From: Macrostomum lignano
Taxonomy: Eukaryota
Reading direction: 5' to 3'
Assembly: GCA_002269645.1 (NCBI GenBank)
Contig: NIVC01001686.1
Coordinates: 1 to 64,000 of the forward strand
Length of the DNA: 64,000 bases
A program made the position numbers and the translations under genes. Of this stretch, positions 48,425 through 64,000 are shown piece after piece; the stretch's first letter is position 1; each line of letters opens with the position of its first letter. Below the pieces are notes generated by a model, which saw only the letters and a list, made by a program, of their open reading frames with translations, had not been told where the DNA came from and searched no databases.

Positions 48425-50000
48425 CTCTAAGAGCGCCAGAATGTACGCTCTTAAGTCTGCACATGTTACTGTCGTGTGCAGTTACAGTCGCGTGGACCAC
48501 CCACGAGTTCGTGTGTGATTCAAGCGATTCGTACAGTATAGCAAAACAACAATGCAACCTATGCGAGGCAACATGACAATAAGTGATCATAGAAATTTCT
48601 CAACAAGGCCAAAAGTCATGTTCGCATTATTTAACGTGTGAATCATGGACTGATCAACTATGCGAGACTAATCACGAAGCCATTTTAGTAGCCTATATTT
48701 ACTGTATGCATGCCATAAGTCTACTCAAATCGAATTCTAATGGTTTATATTTTTGCCAATTGCCAGTATTGAAAAAGAAATTAATACATTATTAATACAC
48801 GCTATTGCGTGGTATATGTATCAAGTATGTACAGTTATTTAAAGGAAATATTAAATTGACAATGCCAATACGCTTGCCACTGCTAATGAATAAGTGTGCA
48901 TCTGTAGATTACCACTCTGCACGAACACGAACATGCACATAGCTAGACTAGGTACACATTCATCCTTGACTGCACAGGCATGGCAAAGACATCGCTAGCT
49001 ACTTCGCTATAGGTAGAGGCCCAGAGGGGCAGATTATATGATATGACAAGTACATGTATAGCTACATGCATATTACTATGTTGCGCATTTCCGGCAACAG
49101 ACCAACAGCTGCAATATTGTGCATGTGCATGCAGTACAGAACCGGCCAGCTGCCACTACAGTATAATTACGAGTCTATTTAATTGAATCATAATCATAAC
49201 TATTGTAATAATTGTAATTGGGCGGGTCTCTTAATCACTGCCAATTGCCCATGTATTATAATATAATACATATTAGCTAGCTAGCTTACCACGTTATTTA
49301 CATTGTCATTGAGTAATGCAGTAGTAGGCCCTAGTAGGGCTTGCTTAGTAATGAATGAGTAAGTCAGTAAAATTCTACCCCACCGTCTTTCCGCACACCG
49401 CATGAACGTGCACAAATGGTATTATAATAGCCGAATGTCTAGAAAATGCTGAAAGAAAAACGAATGTACGCGCTTGTTACTATTGTACTGTTGTACATAC
49501 TGCCATTAAACGTACCAAGCATAACGTACATAAATCGTTGCCCCAGTGTACAATAAACAAATGCCTTACTTTTTACTGTAAGTAGGTAAAACGAATTTTG
49601 CATACAAACTTTATCTACCAACTTAGTCAACACTACAATGCTGAAGCCAGCAGTGACAGTTCATGCTTGCTCTTGTGCAATAATAACGACCTTGAAATTT
49701 CTGTTACAAAACTTTTATCAGAAAATTGTAAATTGACTCTTACTGTTTTTAATTATTGATTTTAAAAGGAATGAGAAAGGTTTTGAGTTTAATTTTTGTC
49801 AACAAATAAGGAAATAATTGTGTAGAAAAATAGTGGATCTACTTCATCCTACTTCACAGAGAAAACGTGACTCAGGCGAGTGGTGCCTTAAAAACGCTAC
49901 TTCTTCACGTTAGACTCGTTTGATATCTCATCGAAAGCGCGCACGCACCGACATTTTACGTCTGCATTCTACATATCTTGCCGAATAATCAAAACTCAGT

Positions 50001-51901
50001 ATGTCGTCCTCCATGTCTGGCTGGCTCACTTCCTCCAACATCTCTGGACGGGAGGATCTGGTGCACATTGCGAAGCTCGCCGAGCAGGCTGAGCGATATG
50101 ACGACATGGCGACTGCCATGAAGGCCGTGACTGAAAAAGGTCAGGAGCTGGGTAATGAGGAGAGAAATCTGCTCTCTGTTGCCTACAAAAACGTTGTCGG
50201 CGCTAGGAGGTCTTCGTGGCGTGTGATCTCTAGCATCGAGAGCAAGACCGAGGGCAGCGAGAGGAAGCAGTCAATGGCTAAAGAATACCGTCAGAAGATT
50301 GAGAGCGAACTGCAGAGGATCTGCAAGGAAGTGTTGGTAAGTCGCTCATCATTTTGAAAGTAAATTGAAATTTATGTAACGTTGTTATTATGGCATGGAG
50401 CTTGTCGCTTATTGCCATATTGTATAGTACTAGTATCTTATTAATTATTAATTTAAAAAGTTCACAGGTAATGTCAATGACAATGTTCAGTGACTGATCA
50501 ATAATAATATTAGCCCTTTAGCATTAGGGAATTAAAAATACAAATTCTCATAGGTAGGGGCCTAGGCTAGTATCAATGCCAATTGCTAATAGTATCATCT
50601 AATATGGCAAAATCTATTGCTAGTACTGGTATCAATTAGACATGTCTTGTGATTCTTAAATTTAAGATTAGGCCTAAGACAATTATATTTTAATTTTTGT
50701 TACACTTAAGCTATAAGGTAAATATAGTCAATTTAATTTAATAATACTTGTTGCTCTAAATCTATATTATTCATTATTACAATAAAATAATTTTAGTAAG
50801 TATAGATGATTCTTAGACTGTTTTATTGTTAAACTATTGATTAAATGATAAAGTAATATATTTGTGATAAATTTAAAGAAAACATATCTATAAAGACTAT
50901 ATCAATGATATGGCCTATCATAGCTTCAGTTTTTTTGTTGAGTATATTTTTTTGTAATTCTTGCATGCTTAATCAAATTCATGAATATTATATAATTAAT
51001 AAAGTAATCCTATAAATAACTGAATAATTCAAATTAATTTTTTTAAATGTTAGCAAAAATTTGGTTTTGTTGAACTCAACTTTCAATGCATGAAGACTGA
51101 AATCTGTATAGTAAGGTGCAACATTAAGGATTAAGCTTGAAAATTTGCATGATTCTGTTTGTTTGATCCCATTTTTTGCTTCTAGTGCATGTTGGTACAA
51201 TAATGTTTGCTGTGTTATGCCATTTTTTCAACTAACATTTTTAGAGCCTCTTGGATGACTACCTAATTAAGAATGCTCCTAACTCGGAGTCGAAGGTTTT
51301 CTACTTCAAGATGAAGGGCGATTATTTCCGCTACCTAGCCGAGGTGGCCACCGGCGACGAGCGCAAGAATGTTGTCGACAGCTCCGAGGGCGCCTACAAG
51401 TCCGCCACTGACCACGCCGAAACTGAGCTGGCCACCACCCATCCCATCCGCCTTGGCCTGGCCCTCAATTATTCAGTGTTCTTCTACGAGATCAAGAACG
51501 ACCCGGAGCGGGCTTGCCAACTGGCCAAGAAGGTGGGTGATTTGTTTATTTCACGATGGCTTGCTGTAAATTTTACTGGCCTTTTAAGCACTTGGATGAT
51601 TTTAAAGTTCTCGTCGCACTTTTTTTATACAGGCCTTCGACAATGCGATTGCGGATCTCGACGATCTGGCCGAAGAGTCCTACAAGGATTCCACTCTGAT
51701 AATGCAGTTGCTGAGGGACAATCTGACTGTAAGTATATTAGCAAATTTATTAAATTCTGTCCAAGAGATCAATTTCTTTTCATTTAATATAAATTATTAC
51801 ACAATACACTTTTCTGATTAATTGTTTCTCCAAACCCTTCAAATTTGCAGCTCTGGACCTCCGAGCAGGGCGGCGACGATGGCGAACAGCAGGACAACTG
51901 A
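50001..51901 (+). CDS. 14-3-3: 14-3-3 protein, proximal isoform/copy A (256 aa)
   Basis: Exons 50001-50336, 51245-51532, 51633-51728, 51851-51901, all phase 0 and GT-AG. Motifs [76 protein letters not shown]. Confidence 0.96.
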
Positions 51902-53704
51902 AATTAATTTATTAATAATTAATCATAAATCATACTAAGCGCAAATGTAGTACAGAAGCAACACTCGCTACACGAATCAAACCAGTTTATTCAATTAGTT
52001 ACTGAAGTATTTGAGACCATTATTGAACACATTCAACACGGACTGGCATATTAATAATAACTTATATATGTATACAATTTAATGTAATATACGCGTACTT
52101 GTTCTCTGCTAAGCATACAAGACTGACTAAAAGTACTAAATGCTAATCTTAGGCGTTGGTTTTGACCGCAACTGAGGCGTGTAAATCTTGCTGTGTTTCT
52201 TTTTAAAAACAAAGTCTGTCATTGGATTATAGAATAGCATAAATTGCTTCGCGCATTCTGCATATATATTTTTTACAAATTCGGTATATATATTTATAGA
52301 TCTATATTAGCGTAAATAGTGGATTTCAAAAGAAATGAGTTTTTTACGCTGAGAGAGATGGTTTCGCACAACAAGTCAAAGTAAAGAATGGACTTTTACT
52401 ATATATCTAGCCAGGCATAAAATTAGCAAAGAACTAGGCTTGTTATCTGTTGTCCGTGGCTAATATTATTCGTCAAATAATCTTTGAGCATCGTATAAAG
52501 CTTATTTGAGCTACTTTTTTTAGTTGGCGTGCTTTTCAATTTGTCCATCCGTAAGCTTTTCTGTTATCAACTTTATTAACCCTATATAAACTCGACCTCT
52601 CTTTTCGGCCACCCTTTTTCTACTGTCTCGAATCAGTCAAATCTGCGTTTAGGCGAAAGAAAGCTTTGGTTGAGCTTTAATTATTTGGTTATTATTAGTT
52701 AAAAAATCTGCCGTTAGAGTCAATTCTATTCAGGTCAGCATCTAAGTAGTAATGCTAGAATTCGTTAATATATTTCAGAAACCGTAGTTGGTTTGTTAGT
52801 ATTTTATATATAACTGTGTAAGCAAAGCACAAAGTTGCATTCAAGTTATTATTATTCACAATAGGAATTCGGTACGCCTCTGGCGAAACGGTGTTCTAAG
52901 ATCTGTCGCTTTGTACTCAGTCTGCAGCATCGTCAGTCTGTCCTTTTTGGCTTTTTGAGCTTGATCAATAAAAATAAGCTTTCTTATCCAATTCAACACA
53001 CCCAAATATATATTTGGCCTTGCTGCGCTTGACTTCAAATCAATTACTAATTTCTGCTTTGAAAAGCATGTGCGTTGTTTTCTGTTGCATGAGCATGCAG
53101 AAGATTGGAATGTTGCATTATAATATGTAGTGTGCTCTGCTCATTGTACCTGAGTAACAAAACCAATCAAATATCAATTATTACGCATTTCAGTGTCTTA
53201 AAATAGCACGTTGAGCTTAATCCACATCAGCCGCAGAAAATATAATATATGGCTCCGCGTTCTCTAAAATTCCTGAAACCCTATTTTCAACCGGAAAAGC
53301 AACAACAAGTATAGAAGTGGCTCAGGTGTTTCATTCCTTTTGCCCTGCCCATATTTGGAGAATCTTTCACTGATCTACGAGAGCGCATATTGCGTAAACA
53401 AGAAAAATCTGATCAAAAAGTAATAATTTCGTACACTCAATTTGCCCTACTTTCAGTAATAAAGGGTGCTTTGTATGTCGATTTTCAGTCAGTACAATAG
53501 AAAACCAAATAGTTCAGCGGATTAAACACTGGTAAGGTTTTTACAAGGCCCTTATTTTATGAAGCTTCTTATAGCCACGATCAAACTAAATAAATGAACA
53601 AAATTACATGTGCACTATGCAACACGCTTTTGGAACTGCTAAATTGGTATTTAAAAATCCCCGGCCAATATATTAATAAATTGATCTGTCTCACGAAATG
53701 CCAG

Positions 53705-54079
53705 GACCTTCTCGACGAGCATCTGATCCAGAAGGCCACTCTGTCTGAGAGTCGAGTGTTCTACCTAAAGATGAAAGGCGATTATTACAGATATCTTGCC
53801 GAGGTAAGAATTCTTATAATTACCAATGTTGTACGAGTATGTACAATTGTACAATGTACATATACGAGCCGTACCATTTAGTGATTTGGAGGGTGAGAGT
53901 AAAAGTATAGAGATGCAGGGAGCTGGGCGACGAGGTTAAATACAGCTAGTATTGTTTTTGAGAGAGTAATATTTCAGAGAGGGTGATCAAGCGGAGTTGG
54001 GAGGGCGAAGGAGAAAGCAGAGTTGGGAGGGCGAGGGAGAGAGCAGAGAGTTGCGAGGGCGAGGGAGAGAGAGCCGGGA

Positions 54080-54165
<86 letters not shown>

Positions 54166-54210
54166 AGATTTGGGAGGGTAAGAGAGAGGAGAGAGAGCAG
54201 ATTTGGGAGG

Positions 54211-54241
<31 letters not shown>

Positions 54242-54287
54242 CAGATTTGGGAGGGTAAGAGAGAGGAGAGAGAGCAGATTTGGGAGG

Positions 54288-54343
<56 letters not shown>

Positions 54344-54453
54344 GGCGCCTCCAATCTCAGGCACGGACGCGGTACATGTAAAAAGGACAAACAAGTCAAG
54401 TTGATTTAAGTTGCCGATATTTCGAATTAGGTAAATTCTTCGTCAGGGCAAGT

Positions 54454-54552
<99 letters not shown>

Positions 54553-56590
54553 TCGGGAGGGCGAGAGAGAGTCAAGATCAGTTGGAAATTCTCGTCTCTG
54601 CATGTACATCCACAAATATTTGCAGCACAAATTAAGTATTTGCCTCACTGATCTCAACGCCGCAGACCGCGGTCCTCAAACCATCCTCAAAGTACTTGTC
54701 AATCCCTCGCACACGCAGGTGGCAGTTGGCGAGCAGCGCACAGACGTGGTCGACAAGAGCATGGAGGCTTACAAAGCGGCTACGAAAAGTGCGGAAGAGA
54801 AACTGCCCACCACTCATCCGATTCGGCTGGGCCTGGCGCTGAACTTCTCCGTTTTCTACTACGAGATCCGCAGCGAGCCAGACCAGGCCTGCCAGCTCGC
54901 CAAGAAAGCCTTCGACGAGGCCATCGCCGAGCTTGATAATCTGCCAGAGGATTCTTACAAGGATAGCACGCTCATTATGCAGCTGCTTCGGGACAACCTC
55001 ACGGTAAGGCTGCTCACATGTTGTTTTTTATTGTAGCCGAAAATACCATTTTAGAAGATTTTCGCCACAGGAATCCCATATTGGATGATTTTAGCTACAG
55101 GAATCCCATTTGGGAGATTTTAGCGACAGGATTCCCATTTTTGATTATTTTAGCTTCAGAAATCCCATTTTGGATGATTTTAGCTACAGGAATCCCATTT
55201 TAGGATTTTTATCCAGGAATCCCTACTTTGGGAGATTTTAGCGACAGGAATCTCATTTTGGGAGATTTTAGCCACAGGAATCCCATTTGGGAGATTTTAG
55301 CCACAGGATTCCCATTTTGGATGATTTTAGCCACCTAGGATTCCCATTTTTGGATTTTTTATCCAGGAATCCCTACTTTGGGAGATTTTAGCGACAGGAA
55401 TCCCATTTTGGATGATTTTAGCGACAGGAATCCCATTTTGGATGATTTTAGCTACAGGAATCCCATTTTGGATGATTTTAGCTACAGGAATCCCATTTGG
55501 GAGATTTTAGCGACAGGATTCCCATTTTGGATGATTTTAGCTACAGGAATCCCATTTTGGGAGATTTTAGCTACAGGATTCCCATTTTGGATGATTTTAG
55601 CTACAGGAATCCCATTTTTGGATTTTTTATCCAGGAATCTTTACTTTGGGAGATTTTAGCGACAGGAATCCCATTTTAGGAGATTTTAGCTACAGAAATC
55701 CCATTTTGGATGATTTTAGCTACAGGATTCCCATTTTTGGATTTTTTATCCAGGAATCCCTACTTTGGGAGATTTTAGCGACAGAAATCTGATTTTGGGA
55801 GATTTTTAGCGAAATGAGTCGTGATTTTAGCCAAGAATCCCAATTAGTGTGGATGAGGAGGAGTGGGTAGGAGGGGCAGATTCCGGAGGGAATGAGGGGC
55901 GGATTCCGGAGGAAATGAGGGGATCCAGGAATCCGTTTTGGGAGATTTTAGCTACAGAAATCCCATTTTGAATGATTTTAGCTACAGGAATCCCATTTTC
56001 GGAAATTTTTAGCGACAGGAATCCCATTGTGGGAGATTTTATCCAGGAATCCCTTTTTGGGAGATGTTAGCGACAGAAATCCCATTTTGCGAGATTTTAA
56101 GTGACAGGAATCCCATTTTGGAAGATTTTAGCCACAGGAATCCCATTTTGGGAGATTTTTAGCGACAGGAATCCCATTGTGGGAGATTTTATCCAGGAAT
56201 CCCTTTTTGGGAGATGTTAGCGACAGAAATCCCATTTTGGGAGATTTTATCCAGGAATTCTTACTTTGGGAGATTTTAGTGACAGGAATCCCATTTGGAA
56301 GATTTTTAGCGAAAGGAGTCCTATTTTGGATGATTTTAGCCAAGAATCCCATTTTGGGATTTTTTGTATAGGAATCTCATTACCGACGGGAATCCCACAT
56401 TGGAAGATTTTTAGCGACAGTAATCCCATTTTGGAAGTCTCCTTTCAGCCAATACTGCACCACTAAACCAAATCTTTAAGTGTAAACTACATGTTGCTCA
56501 TAGTTTATCCGCAATCCTGTTTTACAATAACAGCTGTGGACATCTGAGCAGGATGCTGGAGAAGATGCTGATGGCGGGGATCATCATTGA
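53705..56590 (+). CDS. 14-3-3: 14-3-3 C-terminal exon set B (no separate N-terminal exon seen; probably spliced to exon 50001-50336)
   Basis: Exons 53705-53803 (DLLDEHL...DYYRYLAE), 54719-55003 (VAVGEQR...RDNLT) and 56534-56590 (LWTSEQ...HH-TGA). All are phase 0, open and have canonical splice sites. Confidence 0.9.
53995..54545. repeat. (GA)n microsatellites and GA-rich repeats in a 14-3-3 B intron
   Basis: GA runs at ~54085-54160, 54295-54342 and 54455-54545, with agcagatttgggagggtaag spacers. Confidence 0.93.
55050..56430. repeat. Degenerate 30-bp minisatellite in the last 14-3-3 B intron
   Basis: Unit gattttagc(t/g)acaggaatcccattttggat. Confidence 0.92.
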
Positions 56591-57344
56591 GCAGAGAATG
56601 CGTTTCTATCCAATGCGCTGCATAGAGACAAGGTCACCCATAATCAAATCATTATATCATCGTTGCTGCAGCCGCAGACAAGTAGAAGTACATCGCTTGC
56701 AGTCTGCACTTTATTTATAAATTTAGCGTCAGTTATTTCACAGACTTTATTTGACAAGAAATGCCTCTCCTACAGTATTTATGGCTACTATAAATTTAAT
56801 AGCAAGGTGTTAGTTCATATTTTTTTGGTCTCGCATGCCTAGTTGACTTTTGGCTATAAGCCGCTTACAATTATATTTATAAGATTGTTCACTGCCGTTT
56901 AAAGTGGACCTCAACTATCAAGTCGCATAAATTGTTCTTTACTGGACGCTTAGTAGATTAACCAAATTCAGCAATATCTTAATTATTTCTCTCGCAAACC
57001 AGCAAATATATCACCGGGATATCTGCTTTCCTATCCACCGAATGCTTTCCTTTGTTTAAGTATCTAATTTAAACGATTCTAATTTTGTTAAAATCTATTC
57101 GAAAAACTATTGATTTAAAGTTATTGACAAAAATTTAACGAAGCTCTACGCTAGTAAAAACAAGTACAAATTAAATTATTTTCTCTTTTGTTTAAGTTTC
57201 CCTAAAAAAATAAATATTTCGAATCTTTAAAGCCTGGAGCTTATATTGCTTTCAATTGTTGCCTTGCAGCAGCTGACTACTCCACGTTTTTCCTTTGCGT
57301 TCCTAAAGACTTTTTCTTCCATGCCATCTCTCTTTTGCCTAACC

Positions 57345-60300
57345 GTCTCCTCCTCCTACTCACTTCTCTCTCTACTCTCTCCTCTCCCTACTCTGCTCTC
57401 CCTACTCTCCTCTCCCTACTCTCCTCTCCCTACTCTCCTCTCCCTACTCTCCTCTCCCTACTCTCCTCTCCCTACTCTCCTCTCCCTACTCTCCTCTCCC
57501 TACTCTCCTCTCCCTACTCTCCTCTCCCTACTCTCCTCTCCCTACTCTGCTCTCCCTACTCTGATCTCCCTAGTCTCCTCTCCCTACTCTCTCCTCTCCC
57601 TACTCTGCTCTCCCTACTCTGCTCTCCCTACTCTGTTCTCCCTACTCTCTCCTCTCCCTACTCTCCTCTCCCTACTCTCTCCTCTCCCTACTCTCCTCTC
57701 CCTACTCTGCTCTCCCTACTCTCCTCTCCCTACTCTCCTCTCCCTACTCTCCTCTCCCTACTCTCCTCTCCCTACTCTCCTCTCCCTACTCTTCTCTCCC
57801 TACTCTTCTCTCCCTACTCTCCTCTCCCTACTCTCCTCTCCCTACTCTCTCCTCTCCCTACTCTCCTCTCCCTACTCTCCTCTCCCTACTCTCCTCTCCC
57901 TACTCTCCTCTCCCTACTCTGCTCTCCCTACTCTGCTCTCCCTACTCTGCTCTCCCTACTCTGCTCTCCCTACTCTGCTCTCCCTACTCTGATCTCCCTA
58001 GTCTCCTCTCCCTACTCTCTCCTCTCCCTACTCTGCTCTCCCTACTCTGCTCTCCCTACTCTGTTCTCCCTACTCTCTCCTCTCCCTACTGTCCTCTCCC
58101 TACTCTGCTCTCCCTACTCTGCACTCCCTACTCTGCTCTCCCTACTCTGCACTCCCTACTCTGCTCTCCCTACTCTGCTCTCCCTACTCTCTCCTCTCCC
58201 TACTCTCCTCTCCCTACTCTGCTCTCCCTACTCTGCTCTCCCTACTCTGCTCTCCCTACTCTGCTCTCCCTACTCTCCTCTCCCTACCCTCTCCTCTCCC
58301 TACTCTCTCCTCTCCCTACTCTGCTCTCCCTACTCTGCTCTCCCTACTCTGCTCTCCCTACTCTGCTCTCCCTACTCTGCTCTCCCTACTCTGCTCTCCC
58401 TACTCTGTTCTCCCTACTCTGCTCTCCCTACTCTGCTCTCCCTACTCTGCTCTCCCTACTCTGCTCTCCCTACTCTGTTCTCCCTACTCTCTCCTCTCCC
58501 TACTGTCCTCTCCCTACTCTGCTCTCCCTACTCTGCACTCCCTACTCTGCTCTCCCTACTCTGTTCTCCCTACTCTCTCCTCTCCCTACTGTCCTCTCCC
58601 TACTCTGCTCTCCCTACTCTGCTCTCCCTACTCTGCTCTCCCTAGTCTCCTCTCCATACTCTCTCCTCTCCCTACTCTGCTCTCTCTACTCTCTCTCCTC
58701 TCCCTACTCTCTCCTCTCCCTACTCTCCTCTCCCTACTCTGCACTCCCTACTCTCCTCTCCCTACTCTGCTCTCCCTACTCTGCTCTCCCTACTCTGCTC
58801 TCCCTACTCTGTTCTCCCTACTCTGCTCTCCCTACTCTGCTCTCCCTACTCTGCTCTCCCTACTCTGCTCTCCCTACTCTGTTCTCCCTACTCTCTCCTC
58901 TCCCTACTGTCCTCTCCCTACTCTGCTCTCCCTACTCTGCACTCCCTACTCTGCTCTCCCTACTCTCCTCTCCCTACTCTGCACTCCCTACTCTGCTCTC
59001 CCTACTCTGCTCTCCCTACTCTGCTCTCCCTACTCTGCTCTCCCTACTCTGCTCTCCCTACTCTGCTCTTCCTACTCTGCTCTCCCTACTCTGCTCTCCC
59101 TACTCTGCTCTCCCTACTCTCCTCTCCCTACCCTCTCCTCTCCCTACTCTCTCCTCTCCCTACTCTCCTCTCCCTACTCTCTCCTCTCCCTACTCTCCTC
59201 TCCCTACTCTCCTCTCCCTACTCTCCTCTCCCTACTCTCCTCTCCCTACTCTCCTCTCCCTACTCTCCTCTCCCTACTCTCCTCTCCCTACTCTCCTCTC
59301 CCTACTCTTCTCTCCCTACTCTTCTCTCCCTACTCTCCTCTCCCTACTCTCCTCTCCCTACTCTCTCCTCTCCCTACTCTCCTCTCCCTACTCTCCTCTC
59401 CCTACTCTCCTCTCCCTACTCTCCTCTCCCTACTCTGCTCTCCCTACTCTGCTCTCCCTACTCTGCTCTCCCTACTCTGCTCTCCCTACTCTGCTCTCCC
59501 TACTCTGATCTCCCTAGTCTCCTCTCCCTACTCTCTCCTCTCCCTACTCTGCTCTCCCTACTCTGCTCTCCCTACTCTGTTCTCCCTACTCTCTCCTCTC
59601 CCTACTGTCCTCTCCCTACTCTGCTCTCCCTACTCTGCACTCCCTACTCTGCTCTCCCTACTCTGCACTCCCTACTCTGCTCTCCCTACTCTGCTCTCCC
59701 TACTCTCTCCTCTCCCTACTCTCCTCTCCCTACTCTCTCCTCTCCCTACTCTGCTCTCCCTACTCTGCACTCCCTACTCTGCTCTCCCTACTCTGCTCTC
59801 CCTACTCTGCTCTCCCTACTCTGCTCTCCCTACTCTGCTCTCCCTACTCTGCTCTCCCTACTCTGCTCTCCCTACTCTCTCCTCTCCCTACTCTCCTCTC
59901 CCTACTCTGCTCTCCCTACTCTGCTCTCCCTACTCTGCTCTCCCTACTCTGCTCTCCCTACTCTGCTCTCCCTACTCTGCTCTCCCTACTCTGCTCTCCC
60001 TACTCTGCTCTCCCTACTCTGGTCTCCCTACTCTGCTCTCCCTACTCTGCTCTCCCTACTCTGCTCTCCCTACTCTGCTCTCCCTACTCTGCTCTCCCTA
60101 CTCTGCTCTCCCTACTCTGCTCTCCCTACTCTGCTCTCCCTAGTCTCCTCTCCATACTCTCTCCTCTCCCTACTCTGCTCTCTCTACTCTCTCTCCTCTC
60201 CCTACTCTGCTCTCCCTACTCTGCTCTCCCTACTCTGCTCTCCCTACTCTGCTCTCCCTACTCTGCTCTTCCTACTCTGCTCTCCCTACTCTGCTCTCCC

Positions 60301-60540
60301 TACTCTGTTCTCCCTACTCTGCTCTCCCTAGTCTCCTCTCCATACTCTCTCCTCTCCCTACTCTGCTCTCTCTACTCTCTCTCCTCTCCCTACTCTGCTC
60401 TCCCTACTCTGCTCTCCCTACTCTGCTCTCCCTACTCTCCTCTCCCTACTCTCCTCTCCCTACCCTCTCCTCTCCCTACTCTCTCCTCTCCCTACTCTCC
60501 TCTCTCTACTCCCTACTCTCTCTACTCTCTCCTCTCCCTC
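57345..60540. repeat. 14-bp pyrimidine-rich satellite (~3.2 kb)
   Basis: Unit ctactct(g/c)ctctcc, lying between the convergent 14-3-3 and MCT 3' ends. Confidence 0.96.
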
Positions 60541-60926: not shown

Positions 60927-63900
60927 TCAGTCCGAGCAGTCATTCTCATCAGCTTTCGCTTTGTTCGACTTCTTCTTCAAGGTCACCATTTTGCGCAGCG
61001 GCAAGCAGAGCAGTCCGGCGAGCAGAATCACTGCTCCGGCAAAGTAGAATGTGCTCACCACACTGCCCGTGATGTCTGCCAGGAAGCCTGCGGGTTTTAA
61101 CACAGTGTGCCCAGGTGTGCGTTAAGTTGGTTGGCTTCATGCCAGATTGTGTAGCAATGACCCAATTTCTTTCTAATGTGCTTTTCTATGTAAAAACTCT
61201 CCTCTCCTTCGCTCCTCTCCCTACTCTATCCTCTCCCTACTCTCCTCTCCCTACTCTCTCCTCTCCCCACTCTCTCCTCTCCCTACTCTCCTCTCCCTAC
61301 TCTCCTCTCCCTACTCTCTCCTCTCTCCACTCTATCCTCTCCCTACTCTCCTCTCCCTAATCTCCTCTCCCTACTCTATCCTCTCCCTACTCTATCCTCT
61401 CCCTACTCTCTCCTCTCCCTACTCTCCTCTCCCTACTCTCCTCTCCCTACTCTCCTCTCCTACTCTCCTCTCCCTACTCTCCTCTCCTACTCTCCTCTCC
61501 CTACTCTGCTCTCCCTACTCTCCTCTCCCTATACTTCTCTCCCTTCTCTCTCCTCTCCCTAATCTCATCTCCCTACTCTCCTCTCCCTACTCTCCTCTCC
61601 CTACTCTTTCTCCCTACTCTCCTCTCCCTATACTTCTCTCCCTTCTCTCTCCTCTCCCTAATCTCATCTCCCTATTCTCATCTCCCTACTCTCATCTCCC
61701 TACTCTCCTCTCCCTACTCTCATCTCCCTACTCTCCTCTCCCTACTCTCCTCACCCTATTCTCCTCTCCATACTCTCTACTCTCTAGTAAGCATCAGCAT
61801 CAGCCTATCAGAAAAATCGATATCTGAATTTTTTTGAAACTTGAAACTAAAGCTCACCAATCTCAGATGAGGAATTTGCACTTTGTTCTTTGGTTACGCA
61901 AGATTGTCATTAATATTTACTATTTGTCAGCTACATGCACTCATGTAATACACTGCACACCCTGAAGTTACCTGCTAGTGGCGTGCCGATGAAAGCGGAC
62001 AGGCCCTGGCATAAAATGATAAACCCGAACGCCTCTGACAAGTTGTCAATGCCGACCAGTTCAATGCCGATGATTGATCGAAGGGCAACGAAAATGGCTG
62101 AAATTGGCAGCATATACTCACGGCATATTGACAGGCCTATCGTAGGATTGTAGCAAATGCTCAAGACCGTATAGAATGATTGGTACGAGAGTGTCTTAGG
62201 AAGAATAGAACAGCGAGGATAGAACAAAGACCAAAATGAGTTGAGGACAAAGTTAAAACCAAGAAGAGTTAGAGGATACAAAGACCAGGAAGAGTTAGGT
62301 GGCACATAGACCAGCAAGAGAAACTATTAAACAAAGACTAGGAAGAGAACGGAGGACACAAGGATCCGAAAGAGTTAGCGGATACAAAGTCCAAAAAGAG
62401 AAAGAAAGGACACAAAGACCAGCAAGTGTTTGAAAACACAAAGACAAGGAAGAGAGCGGTGGACACAAAACTAATCAATAAATTAAAAACGCAGAAAAAA
62501 CAGGTAAGAATTGCCAATTTTCTGGTTGCCCCCTCATACGCACCGATGCAGCTCCCAAACACCACACACGCCATCACCAGCAGAGCGAAGCTCCGATACA
62601 GAACAAAAAATCCAGTAGCGATTCCACCAATAGTCAACGAGAAGCTGTTAATCAACAGACTGTCGGCCCAAGGTCGATCAGCCACCCAGCCAACAAGAAG
62701 GCGAGACACGAGGTTCACCCAGCCGGTGACGGAGATCAAGTCCTGCGGCGCCGAGTCTCTCAGCGACAGAGACTTAGCGTACACGGGTATGTAGGTGAAC
62801 GGAATGTAGAATCCTGTGGGATGCGGTAACGAACGAATGCAATAATTTTAAGAATTGAGTAGCAATCTGAAATTCATTTAGCATATCGCAAAGTACTATC
62901 TGAAGCTAGGAATAGGAGTTTCTCGGAAGCCTCACCGGCCATGCAGAGGAAGCAGGCTGCTCCATAGATGGCCAAAGCTGGATTTCCTCGCAGCAGCCGG
63001 AGCAGTTTCAAAGCCTCCCGGCTCAGTCGTCGAAGTCGAGCTTTCAAGCTGTCATTCTCATCGTCGGCTGTTGAAGCCTGCGGCATCTCCTGCGAGGCCT
63101 CCAGTCGCAGAATTTCATCTCGAAGTACGTCTAGGTTAGTTGTAGAAGCGGCCGCCGCAGCCAACTGCCAGTCGCTGCCACCGACTGAACGATATTTCGG
63201 TCGAGAGATGTCGATCCGGTGTAGTCGACGTTGGCGATGCTGCTGAACGTTCGATGCACTACTCTGGGCGAGGCCTGTAAGGCTGCTGCGATTTGAGTAA
63301 GTATTTGATGCGATGCTTAAATTCTGAGAGGTGATTCATGAGGTTCTCTACGTTGCTTTGCACGAAACCTAAAACCCTCCAGAGTGCTCATCTGGAAGTG
63401 ATTCATGAGGTTCTCTACGTTGCTTTGCACGAAACCTAAAACCCTCCAGAGTGCTCATCTGGAAGTGATTCATTCATGAGGTTCTCTACGTTGCTTTGCA
63501 CGAAACCTAAAACCCTCCAGAGTGCTCATCTGGAAGTGATTCATTCATGAGGTTCTCTACGTTGCTTTGCACGAAACCTAAAACCCTCCAGAGTGCTCAT
63601 CTGGAAGTGATTCATGAGGTTCTCTACGTCGCTTTCCGCGAAACCTAAAACCCTCCAGAGTGCTCTGCATGATCTATTAGGCTCTCTACTGTTTTTTATC
63701 ATGTCTGAAGCATAATTCCTAAGTGTTTTGAGCGATAATAGCACCTATGTGTCGATTTCAGTCTTCTCTTGAAGTTTCTAAACAAGTTCAGTGGTTGCTT
63801 TATCAAGCTAGGACGGCAATATTAAACTAGATCGGAACTAGCCATGAATAGCTAGAACAACCATACCTCGCTGCATCAGCCTGTTGCTGCTTCTGCTGCT

Positions 63901-64000
63901 GATTCTTTGTAGCCGGTGGCTGCTTCTGCGGCTGCGTATGAAGATTCAACAACAGCATTGGCTGCGAGCCAGTCGTGTCGCCGCCACCGGCGCCATGGAC
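60927..64000 (-). CDS. Monocarboxylate transporter (SLC16/MFS) family, 3' part (5' end beyond window)
   Basis: Minus-strand exons ~63867-64000+, ~62936-63282 (acceptor chosen by phase, less certain), 62544-62813, 61972-62097, 60927-61087. They read [19 protein letters not shown] (TM7), [19 protein letters not shown] (MFS loop), [21 protein letters not shown]...[20 protein letters not shown]...FYFAG...stop, typical of SLC16. Confidence 0.88.
61198..61785. repeat. 14-bp pyrimidine-rich satellite in the last MCT intron
   Basis: Same ctactctcctctcc family as 57345-60540. Confidence 0.93.
63331..63665. repeat. 67/71-bp tandem repeat (5 copies) in an MCT intron
   Basis: gtgattcatgaggttctctacg...catctggaa starts at 63331, 63398, 63465, 63536, 63607. 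Confidence 0.93.

Follow-up and report, generated by a model that had tools for sequence, protein, structure and literature searches.

14-3-3 proteins are dimeric hubs of phospho-signalling, which animals usually diversify by duplication of whole genes and insects by the swap of one exon. Another architecture is represented by the calcitonin/CGRP gene CALCA and by lola and fruitless of Drosophila, where one promoter and common 5′ exon(s) serve alternative 3′ exon sets with their own poly(A) sites, the outcome being set by competition between splicing and cleavage. Here, we consider a 14-3-3 gene of the flatworm Macrostomum lignano contained in contig NIVC01001686.1 of the assembly GCA_002269645.1 (positions 1 to 64,000 of the forward strand; this whole 64-kb stretch is referred to below as the window), in which one N-terminal exon is followed by two intact and diverged sets of C-terminal exons, A and B. 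The interpretation that we favour, and that we regard as about evenly poised, is that of a single transcription unit in which a common first exon serves two alternative 3′ exon blocks, giving rise to a second 14-3-3 isoform.

Within the same protein family the 14-3-3 zeta cluster of Drosophila is described, where three alternative exons are used in a mutually exclusive manner controlled by docking/selector RNA pairing (PMC6071210). Concatenated duplicate exons are also visible in gene models of arthropods, nematodes, and annelids: 14-3-3 zeta models of 285-390 aa with tandem duplicated internal exons read through by the predictors are exemplified by P0019 (Dracunculus), P0010 (Frankliniella), P0117 (Lamellibrachia), and P0002 (Habropoda). 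Expression of flatworm genes is furthermore shaped by the spliced leader (SL). Approximately 30% of M. lignano genes are trans-spliced and ~15% belong to operons (≤1 kb between genes, repeat-adjusted), the leader being a 35-nt sequence, CGGTCTCTTACTGCGAAGACTCAATTTATTGCATG, which ends in ...UUGCAUG (PMC8629364). An AUG at the 3′ end is common to flatworm leaders, and in Schistosoma mansoni this AUG serves as initiator, being in frame in 28% of cases with more than 40 cDNAs dependent on it, as far as this is conveyed by a later paper (Cheng 2006, cited in PMC9851317), and SL and cis-splicing share internal acceptors (PMC5832876).

Anatomy of the locus

The 14-3-3 gene occupies the + strand, all its splice sites are of AG/GT type, every exon boundary lies in phase 0, and both 3′ sets end with TGA. 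Its 5′ untranslated region (UTR, 49950..50000) is defined by a transcript of a related Macrostomum species (L019) aligning from 49950 into exon 1 collinearly with the genome; because of this collinearity, the A mRNA is not SL trans-spliced, at least in this close relative. Exon 1 (50001..50336, 336 nt) comprises 112 codons from the ATG to the terminal QRICKEVL, covers helices A to mid-D, and supplies the equivalents of K49 and R56. Its donor, GTTG/gtaagt, follows 50336 in phase 0, and its sequence is 100% identical in two other contigs of the same assembly that carry this locus, NIVC01001523.1 and NIVC01000797.1 (hereafter L012 and L013). Along the A path it is followed by an AT-rich intron of 908 nt (50337..51244), for which 2.7% substitutions and additional indels are registered between the copies of the locus, and by three exons. 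Exon A2 (51245..51532, 96 codons, SLLDDYL...QLAKK) agrees with two spliced A-type transcripts of related species, L001 and L019, both of which contain the junction of exon 1 with A2; exon A3 (51633..51728, 32 codons, AFDNAI...RDNLT) has the support of spliced A-type transcripts as well, and exon A4 (51851..51901), ending with the stop codon TGA at 51899-51901, completes isoform A of 256 aa, which exactly matches the M. lignano UniProt entry A0A1I8II35.

The A 3′ UTR and the spacer between the blocks together span 1803 nt (51902..53704, 34% GC) without any 14-3-3 relic and contain poly(A) hexamers AATAAA at 52967, 53458, 53589, and 53675 and ATTAAA at 53521. Exon B2 (53705..53803, 33 codons, DLLDEHL...RYLAE) begins behind the acceptor tgccag/GAC and is 100% identical in L012 and L013. 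This acceptor sits at the ancestral position of intron 1, in phase 0, that is, at the same position as the acceptor of A2. The intron behind B2 (53804..54718) is filled with (GA)n and a 77-nt repeat, its length being 915 nt here, 1764 nt in L012, and 918 nt in L013. Exon B3 (54719..55003, 95 codons, VAVGEQ...RDNLT) is continuous over the place of the KK/AF intron of set A. The next intron (55004..56533) consists mostly of a 30-nt minisatellite (55042-56359, ~44 copies), and exon B4 (56534..56590) closes the frame with TGA at 56588-56590. A candidate poly(A) signal of B, AATAAA, is located at 57209..57214, 619 nt past the stop, with ATTAAA at 57170. Thus, one donor after 50336 faces two acceptors, at 51245 and 53705, and each block possesses its own stop codon and poly(A) signal, as in the layout of alternative 3′ blocks. 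Exon 1 joined to B would encode 258 aa. The C-terminal halves of A and B are identical at 72% of aligned positions (102/142), and their difference in introns amounts to two losses: the AE/VA intron is absent from A and the KK/AF intron from B. In the initial annotation exon 1 and two intact 3′ sets starting at the same protein position, each with its own stop, had been delineated with exact coordinates and splice sites; its estimate of A/B identity (about 73%, 98/134) is close to ours, and the AATAAA signals that it placed near 52966 and 57209 are indeed found, along with the further ones listed above.

The same layout in three copies of the locus precludes its explanation by an assembly artefact, since both NIVC01001523.1 and NIVC01000797.1 are collinear with the window and bear the same exon 1, A, and B exons. 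The earlier statement that set B has no visible first exon was borne out at the scale of the whole window: tblastn (E≤10) revealed no second 14-3-3 N-terminal half in the 64 kb besides exon 1, and a hidden Markov model (HMM) built from 19 14-3-3 N-terminal halves detected only exon 1 in all six frames. A second N-terminal exon within the window was rejected on this basis. Nor is the arrangement shared by M. lignano 14-3-3 genes in general: the paralogue loci Mlig010039 (four copies) and Mlig006670 (three copies) both consist of exon 1 and A-type exons, and no B-like block occurs within 10 kb of either.

Constraint, expression, and start codon of block B

Set B retains an intact open reading frame (ORF) of 146 codons distributed over three exons. 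Comparison with L012 and L013 gives 0-1 substitutions in its 441 coding nucleotides (0-0.23%), with neither indels nor changed amino acids, whereas the rate of substitution is 1.7% in non-coding DNA, where indels are numerous as well (12-14 events per 1.8 kb of flank), and 0.39% in the coding sequence of A. The Poisson probability of this deficit is 0.0006-0.0045, or ~0.01-0.07 if the lower local non-coding rate is applied. Repeats in the introns of B vary in length by up to 850 nt between the copies while the B exons stay fixed, and the GC content at third codon positions (GC3) of B is 0.65 versus 34% GC in its surroundings. No sign of a pseudogene was found: ORF, acceptor, donors, and stop are intact in three copies. 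Judged by these sequence properties, B is clearly under selection.

At the protein level both combinations look like complete family members. Exon 1 with A scores 348.2 bits and exon 1 with B 348.4 bits against Pfam PF00244 (cut-off 33.2), in either case over profile positions 2-223 of 223, the B half alone covering positions 93-223, and the best relatives in the Protein Data Bank (PDB) are 14-3-3 zeta chains (E 5e-112). The phosphopeptide groove of human zeta is lined by K49 and R56 in the N-terminal half and by K120, R127, Y128, L172, N173, V176, E180, L216, I217, L220, D223, N224, L227, and W228 in the C-terminal half. Every one of these C-terminal residues is identical in A, B, and human zeta; the differences between A and B are concentrated in helix F (12 of 25 positions), loops, and the tail, with none in the groove. 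Thus, the expectation of the initial annotation that two isoforms would present different client surfaces was overstated. The paired F/Y swap that separates B from A also distinguishes the two exon copies in the nematode model P0019.

In the neighbour-joining tree, B is placed with full-length environmental 14-3-3s (P0006, P0063, and P0070), with an ordinary branch length and outside the Macrostomum A-type clade, while exon 1 is nested inside this clade. Considering the substitution deficit, GC3, fixed exons, groove residues, and tree position together, B is half of an old, more canonical paralogue and still constrained. For P0006, the nearest full-length relative of B, at least three synonymously diverged mRNA variants with different 5′ UTRs, AT-rich codons, and identical protein are present in soil and litter metatranscriptomes of the Joint Genome Institute (JGI; L002-L011), a pattern pointing to a degenerate polyploid, for instance a bdelloid rotifer.

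Set B is 100% identical to the M. lignano GenBank protein PAA66868.1/PAA76752.1 (BOX15_Mlig017350g1/g2). Since this model originates from an RNA-seq-based pipeline, B is taken to be transcribed; an untranscribed set B, which the initial annotation had named as an outcome fatal to its proposal, is very unlikely.

The way in which B acquires a start codon is less straightforward. Its first methionine (MKGDYY) is 22 codons inside exon B2, and the preceding 22 codons are conserved 14-3-3 sequence. Upstream, an in-frame ORF of 37 codons runs from an ATG at 53594 into B2 (53594..53704) and is the only + strand ORF of the spacer. It had been overlooked in the initial annotation, which was otherwise right in describing the spacer as AT-rich and devoid of 14-3-3 relics. 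In L013, this extension is broken by two in-frame stops (AAA->TAA and TGG->TAG) next to identical B exons, and on this ground the genomic ATG at 53594 was rejected as the start of B; the extension is a chance, non-coding one. Since 22 conserved codons precede the first methionine and the only upstream ATG frame is broken in L013, it follows from the sequence that B cannot start its conserved part alone and that splicing onto the 53705 acceptor has to supply the start codon. Two routes can be envisaged, cis-splicing of exon 1 or addition of the spliced leader. Both may operate, since in S. mansoni internal acceptors are contested between the leader and cis donors. The SL sequence itself is absent from the window and the loci; as B2 starts in phase 0, the AUG of the leader would be in frame at 53705.

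Proposed alternative 3′ blocks and competing explanations

According to the interpretation that we favour, transcription would begin near 49950, and on the usual path the donor of exon 1 would pair with the acceptor of A2, followed by cleavage at the A poly(A) sites and production of the abundant 256-aa isoform A. On a minority path, polymerase would read past these sites and the same donor would join the acceptor of B2, skipping the whole block A and giving the 258-aa 14-3-3 composed of exon 1 and B, which would end at the B poly(A) site near 57230. The 50336 to 53705 junction is itself what we infer, from surroundings that were observed: the anatomy, the sole N-terminal half, the selection on B, and its need for a start from outside. 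Helices A to mid-D, with the dimer interface and K49/R56, would be common to both isoforms, and their phosphopeptide groove would be identical; helix F, loops, and the acidic tail would set them apart. As to the origin, B would be a remnant of an older, more canonical paralogue now situated downstream of a Macrostomum-specific A-type gene, deprived of exon 1 and, as far as can be judged, of its own start codon; after the loss of its first exon, only splicing to exon 1 would give an immediately functional product. The preference for the shared-exon isoform stems from the conservation of B, which is that of a canonical full-length 14-3-3: a fragment starting in the middle of helix D, deprived of the dimer interface and of two out of four residues that bind phosphate, should not stay conserved like a whole 14-3-3. 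The grouping of the B half with full-length proteins, with no acceleration of its branch, is as expected of a piece working in a whole 14-3-3. The tandem duplicated alternative exons of insect 14-3-3 zeta genes (PMC6071210) provide a precedent. The idea of a single gene with two isoforms, put forward in the initial annotation, is plausible and gains partial support from the anatomy, the selection on B, and the full Pfam score of exon 1 with B; it had left SL trans-splicing out of account, and no transcript or protein combining exon 1 with B occurs in the collections searched.

Several observations speak against the shared first exon. The exact sequence of exon 1 joined to B is absent among ~15 billion public proteins, and homology searches together with degenerate-DNA scans of JGI contigs gave no further B transcript, returning only P0122 and P0220. 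None of the public gene models of the locus (A0A1I8II35, A0A1I8IT57, and PAA66868.1) joins exon 1 directly to B2, and the only RNA-based model of B (PAA66868.1/PAA76752.1) is devoid of exon 1 and starts at the internal methionine, with a length of 124 aa. The acceptor of A2 emerges 2.4 kb earlier in transcription and its polypyrimidine tract is the better one, which makes its skipping a point to be explained. A docking/selector type of RNA pairing was considered in this respect, and no convincing long-range pairing able to loop out block A was found: the candidates are limited to short AT-rich inverted repeats, the best combining 51142-51168 with 53579-53605 (27 nt, 70% complementary), and three near-identical copies of the locus give no power for covariation. 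Furthermore, in an SL-using organism the leader is the default partner for an acceptor lying downstream of a poly(A) site. Finally, transcriptomes of related Macrostomum species yielded three A-type paralogues and no B-type transcript. Given that A-type transcripts were found in several of these species (P0004 and P0217-P0219) and B-type ones were not, weak expression of B or its restriction to M. lignano is suggested.

Public annotation of the locus comprises three conflicting models: A alone (A0A1I8II35), a chain of exon 1, A2, A3, B2, and B3 (A0A1I8IT57), and B alone (PAA66868.1). The chain (P0220, 367 aa) would encode one and a half 14-3-3 domains and was not accepted as proof of an A3 to B2 junction; treated as a chain assembled by a predictor maximising ORF length, it is probably a prediction artefact. 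The 124-aa model was likewise down-weighted as proof that B lacks exon 1, because the pipeline, which cuts transcripts at SL peaks and applies a strict isoform filter, also starts Mlig006670g3 at exon 2. In this paralogue (L020 9998-11296 and L021 9998-11264) the GenBank coding sequence (CDS) is partial and begins at codon 2 of exon 2, with an intact exon 1 found 5.4-6.1 kb before it. Two readings offer themselves: exon 1 was missed in annotation, or the leader is trans-spliced onto the exon-2 acceptor of this ordinary 14-3-3 gene, where its AUG would be in frame as well. GenBank annotation contains the B fragment and omits isoform A in all copies of the locus. A is evidently expressed, since A-type transcripts are readily recovered from related species. 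No mention of Mlig017350 was found in the supplements of the M. lignano papers searched.

Among the rival explanations the strongest, a serious one though on balance less likely, considers B as an operon-like downstream cistron transcribed either as read-through of A or from a spacer promoter, with the leader spliced onto 53705 to give M+DLLDEHL..., a 147-aa half 14-3-3. Such a product would extend from the end of helix D through helix I without the dimer interface and K49/R56; it might function, for instance by binding clients as a monomer or as a dominant-negative fragment, unless the mRNA is unproductive. Widespread use of the leader in M. lignano genes and operons (PMC8629364), the poly(A) hexamers 30-740 nt upstream of the B2 acceptor, and the initiator role of flatworm SL AUGs, as far as reported by Cheng 2006 through PMC9851317, are all in line with this scheme. 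So is the RNA-based GenBank model of B, which starts near B2 and includes neither exon 1 nor the ATG at 53594. That the upstream A gene is not trans-spliced in the relative fits too, as the same is true for 18% of first operon genes. Nevertheless, helix E of a half 14-3-3 would have its hydrophobic face exposed, yet B is conserved over its full length at the rate of full-length 14-3-3s, and an orphaned half without function should have decayed. The acceptor TGCCAG deviates from the enriched trans-splice motif [T/C]TNCAG, though only 44% of real sites carry the motif (PMC8629364), and the exact MDLLDEHL... protein is absent from the same ~15 billion public proteins. Besides, use of the leader would not exclude the cis isoform, acceptors being shared in S. 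mansoni (PMC5832876).

A stricter version, in which B is a dedicated half-14-3-3 cistron whose 147-aa C-terminal product, started by the SL-donated AUG at 53705, is translated and selected in spite of being unable to dimerise and lacking K49/R56, appears improbable to us. Other 14-3-3 genes of M. lignano could use the same SL-AUG mechanism at their homologous exon-2 acceptor; the model of Mlig006670g3, too, begins at exon 2. An ORF of 148 aa from a marine eukaryote (P0131, MERC) has its methionine almost exactly at the same exon-2 boundary (MGLDKHLIPK...) and may be another half-length transcript or a fragment.

Still less probable is that B represents a recently orphaned remnant of a tandem paralogue, which lost exon 1 and the promoter by deletion shortly before the copies of the locus diverged and is incidentally transcribed with no selected product. 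A divergence of only ~1.7% between the copies would leave little time for decay, the substitution deficit is marginal with the local rate (P ~0.01-0.07), no B-type mRNA was found in related species, and the Mlig010039 and Mlig006670 loci do without a B block. On the other side, two comparisons of the 441-nt CDS showed at most one substitution and no indels while the flanks and B introns vary, codon bias is kept, and none of the three copies has lost the acceptor, a donor, or the stop. The slightest chance is left to an unseen N-terminal exon of B, situated >50 kb upstream, or elsewhere and joined by trans-splicing between pre-mRNAs (a process known from other systems, as far as PMC9258826 is indicative), or missing from all assemblies: the B lineage once had an N-terminal half, its nearest relatives P0006, P0063, and P0070 being full length, but the HMM found none on either strand of the 64 kb, three independently assembled copies agree, an average M. 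lignano intron spans 1.1-1.4 kb, and a complete A gene would lie between such an exon and B2.

The flanks of the gene are dominated by repeats. Nearly all of the 50 kb upstream, in the segment 11700-49000, is occupied by a mosaic of minisatellites, more than 20 unrelated arrays each repeating a unit of 13-40 nt over 0.4-2 kb, and the long ORFs listed upstream of the gene fall nearly all within these arrays and are likely artefacts. A 3.1-kb array of the 14-nt unit CTCTGCTCTCCCTA (57377-60528, ~220 copies) begins 170 nt past the B poly(A) signal and is followed by a related array at 61196-61784, array length varying between the copies of the locus. Further downstream of B a major-facilitator (MFS_1) gene is annotated in the GenBank copy on the opposite, minus strand (19366-23707 in L012; ~61000-64000 of the window), and a 71-nt tandem repeat occupies 63323-63665.

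The locus among known modes of isoform production

If the shared-exon interpretation of this locus is true, it would add a third route of 14-3-3 diversification, in which one half, responsible for dimerisation, is kept and the entire other half is swapped, and a tandem paralogue that lost its first exon would turn out to be rescued by the upstream gene. The resulting isoforms would be alike in groove and dimer interface and unlike in outer surface and tail. The locus also offers a clean test case for the competition between cis- and SL trans-splicing at one flatworm acceptor and for the ability of an SL-donated AUG to create truncated proteins, in an organism that is tractable by transgenesis and for which RNA-seq, SL, and poly(A) tracks exist.

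Each of the described systems shares some features with this arrangement. Drosophila 14-3-3 zeta (leonardo), with its insect counterparts the nearest parallel within the same family, likewise has tandem homologous coding exons, shared N-terminal exons, and isoform differences in the region of helices F-H; there, however, one internal exon is swapped and the isoforms rejoin common downstream exons, whereas here the alternative extends to the whole 3′ half, whose three exons come with a separate stop, 3′ UTR, and poly(A) signal. A cluster of mutually exclusive exons is defined by shared exons on both sides, and no shared downstream exon is present at this locus. The 389-aa protein P0001 of Elysia chlorotica, with two identical halves, was not used as a precedent since it looks like an assembly or prediction duplication. 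With flatworm SL operons the locus has in common a coding block downstream on the same strand, candidate poly(A) signals within 1 kb ahead of its acceptor, the lack of an own AUG, and a leader AUG that would be in frame; operon genes, however, normally encode complete and unrelated proteins, while B is the back half of the fold of the upstream gene's own family. As in a partial tandem duplicate or unprocessed pseudogene, a paralogous copy without promoter and first exon lies directly downstream of a complete gene, but disabling mutations are absent, splice sites and codon bias are kept, and a deficit of substitutions relative to the flanks shows in three copies. In layout the locus resembles CALCA, lola, and fruitless, where common 5′ exon(s) feed alternative 3′ blocks, each with its own poly(A) site, although those blocks are usually not homologous halves of one globular domain, while here the fold can be completed by either of two paralogous blocks with 72% identity. 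The locus fits the class of alternative 3′ exon blocks, and its unusual trait lies in the paralogy of these blocks as halves of one fold.

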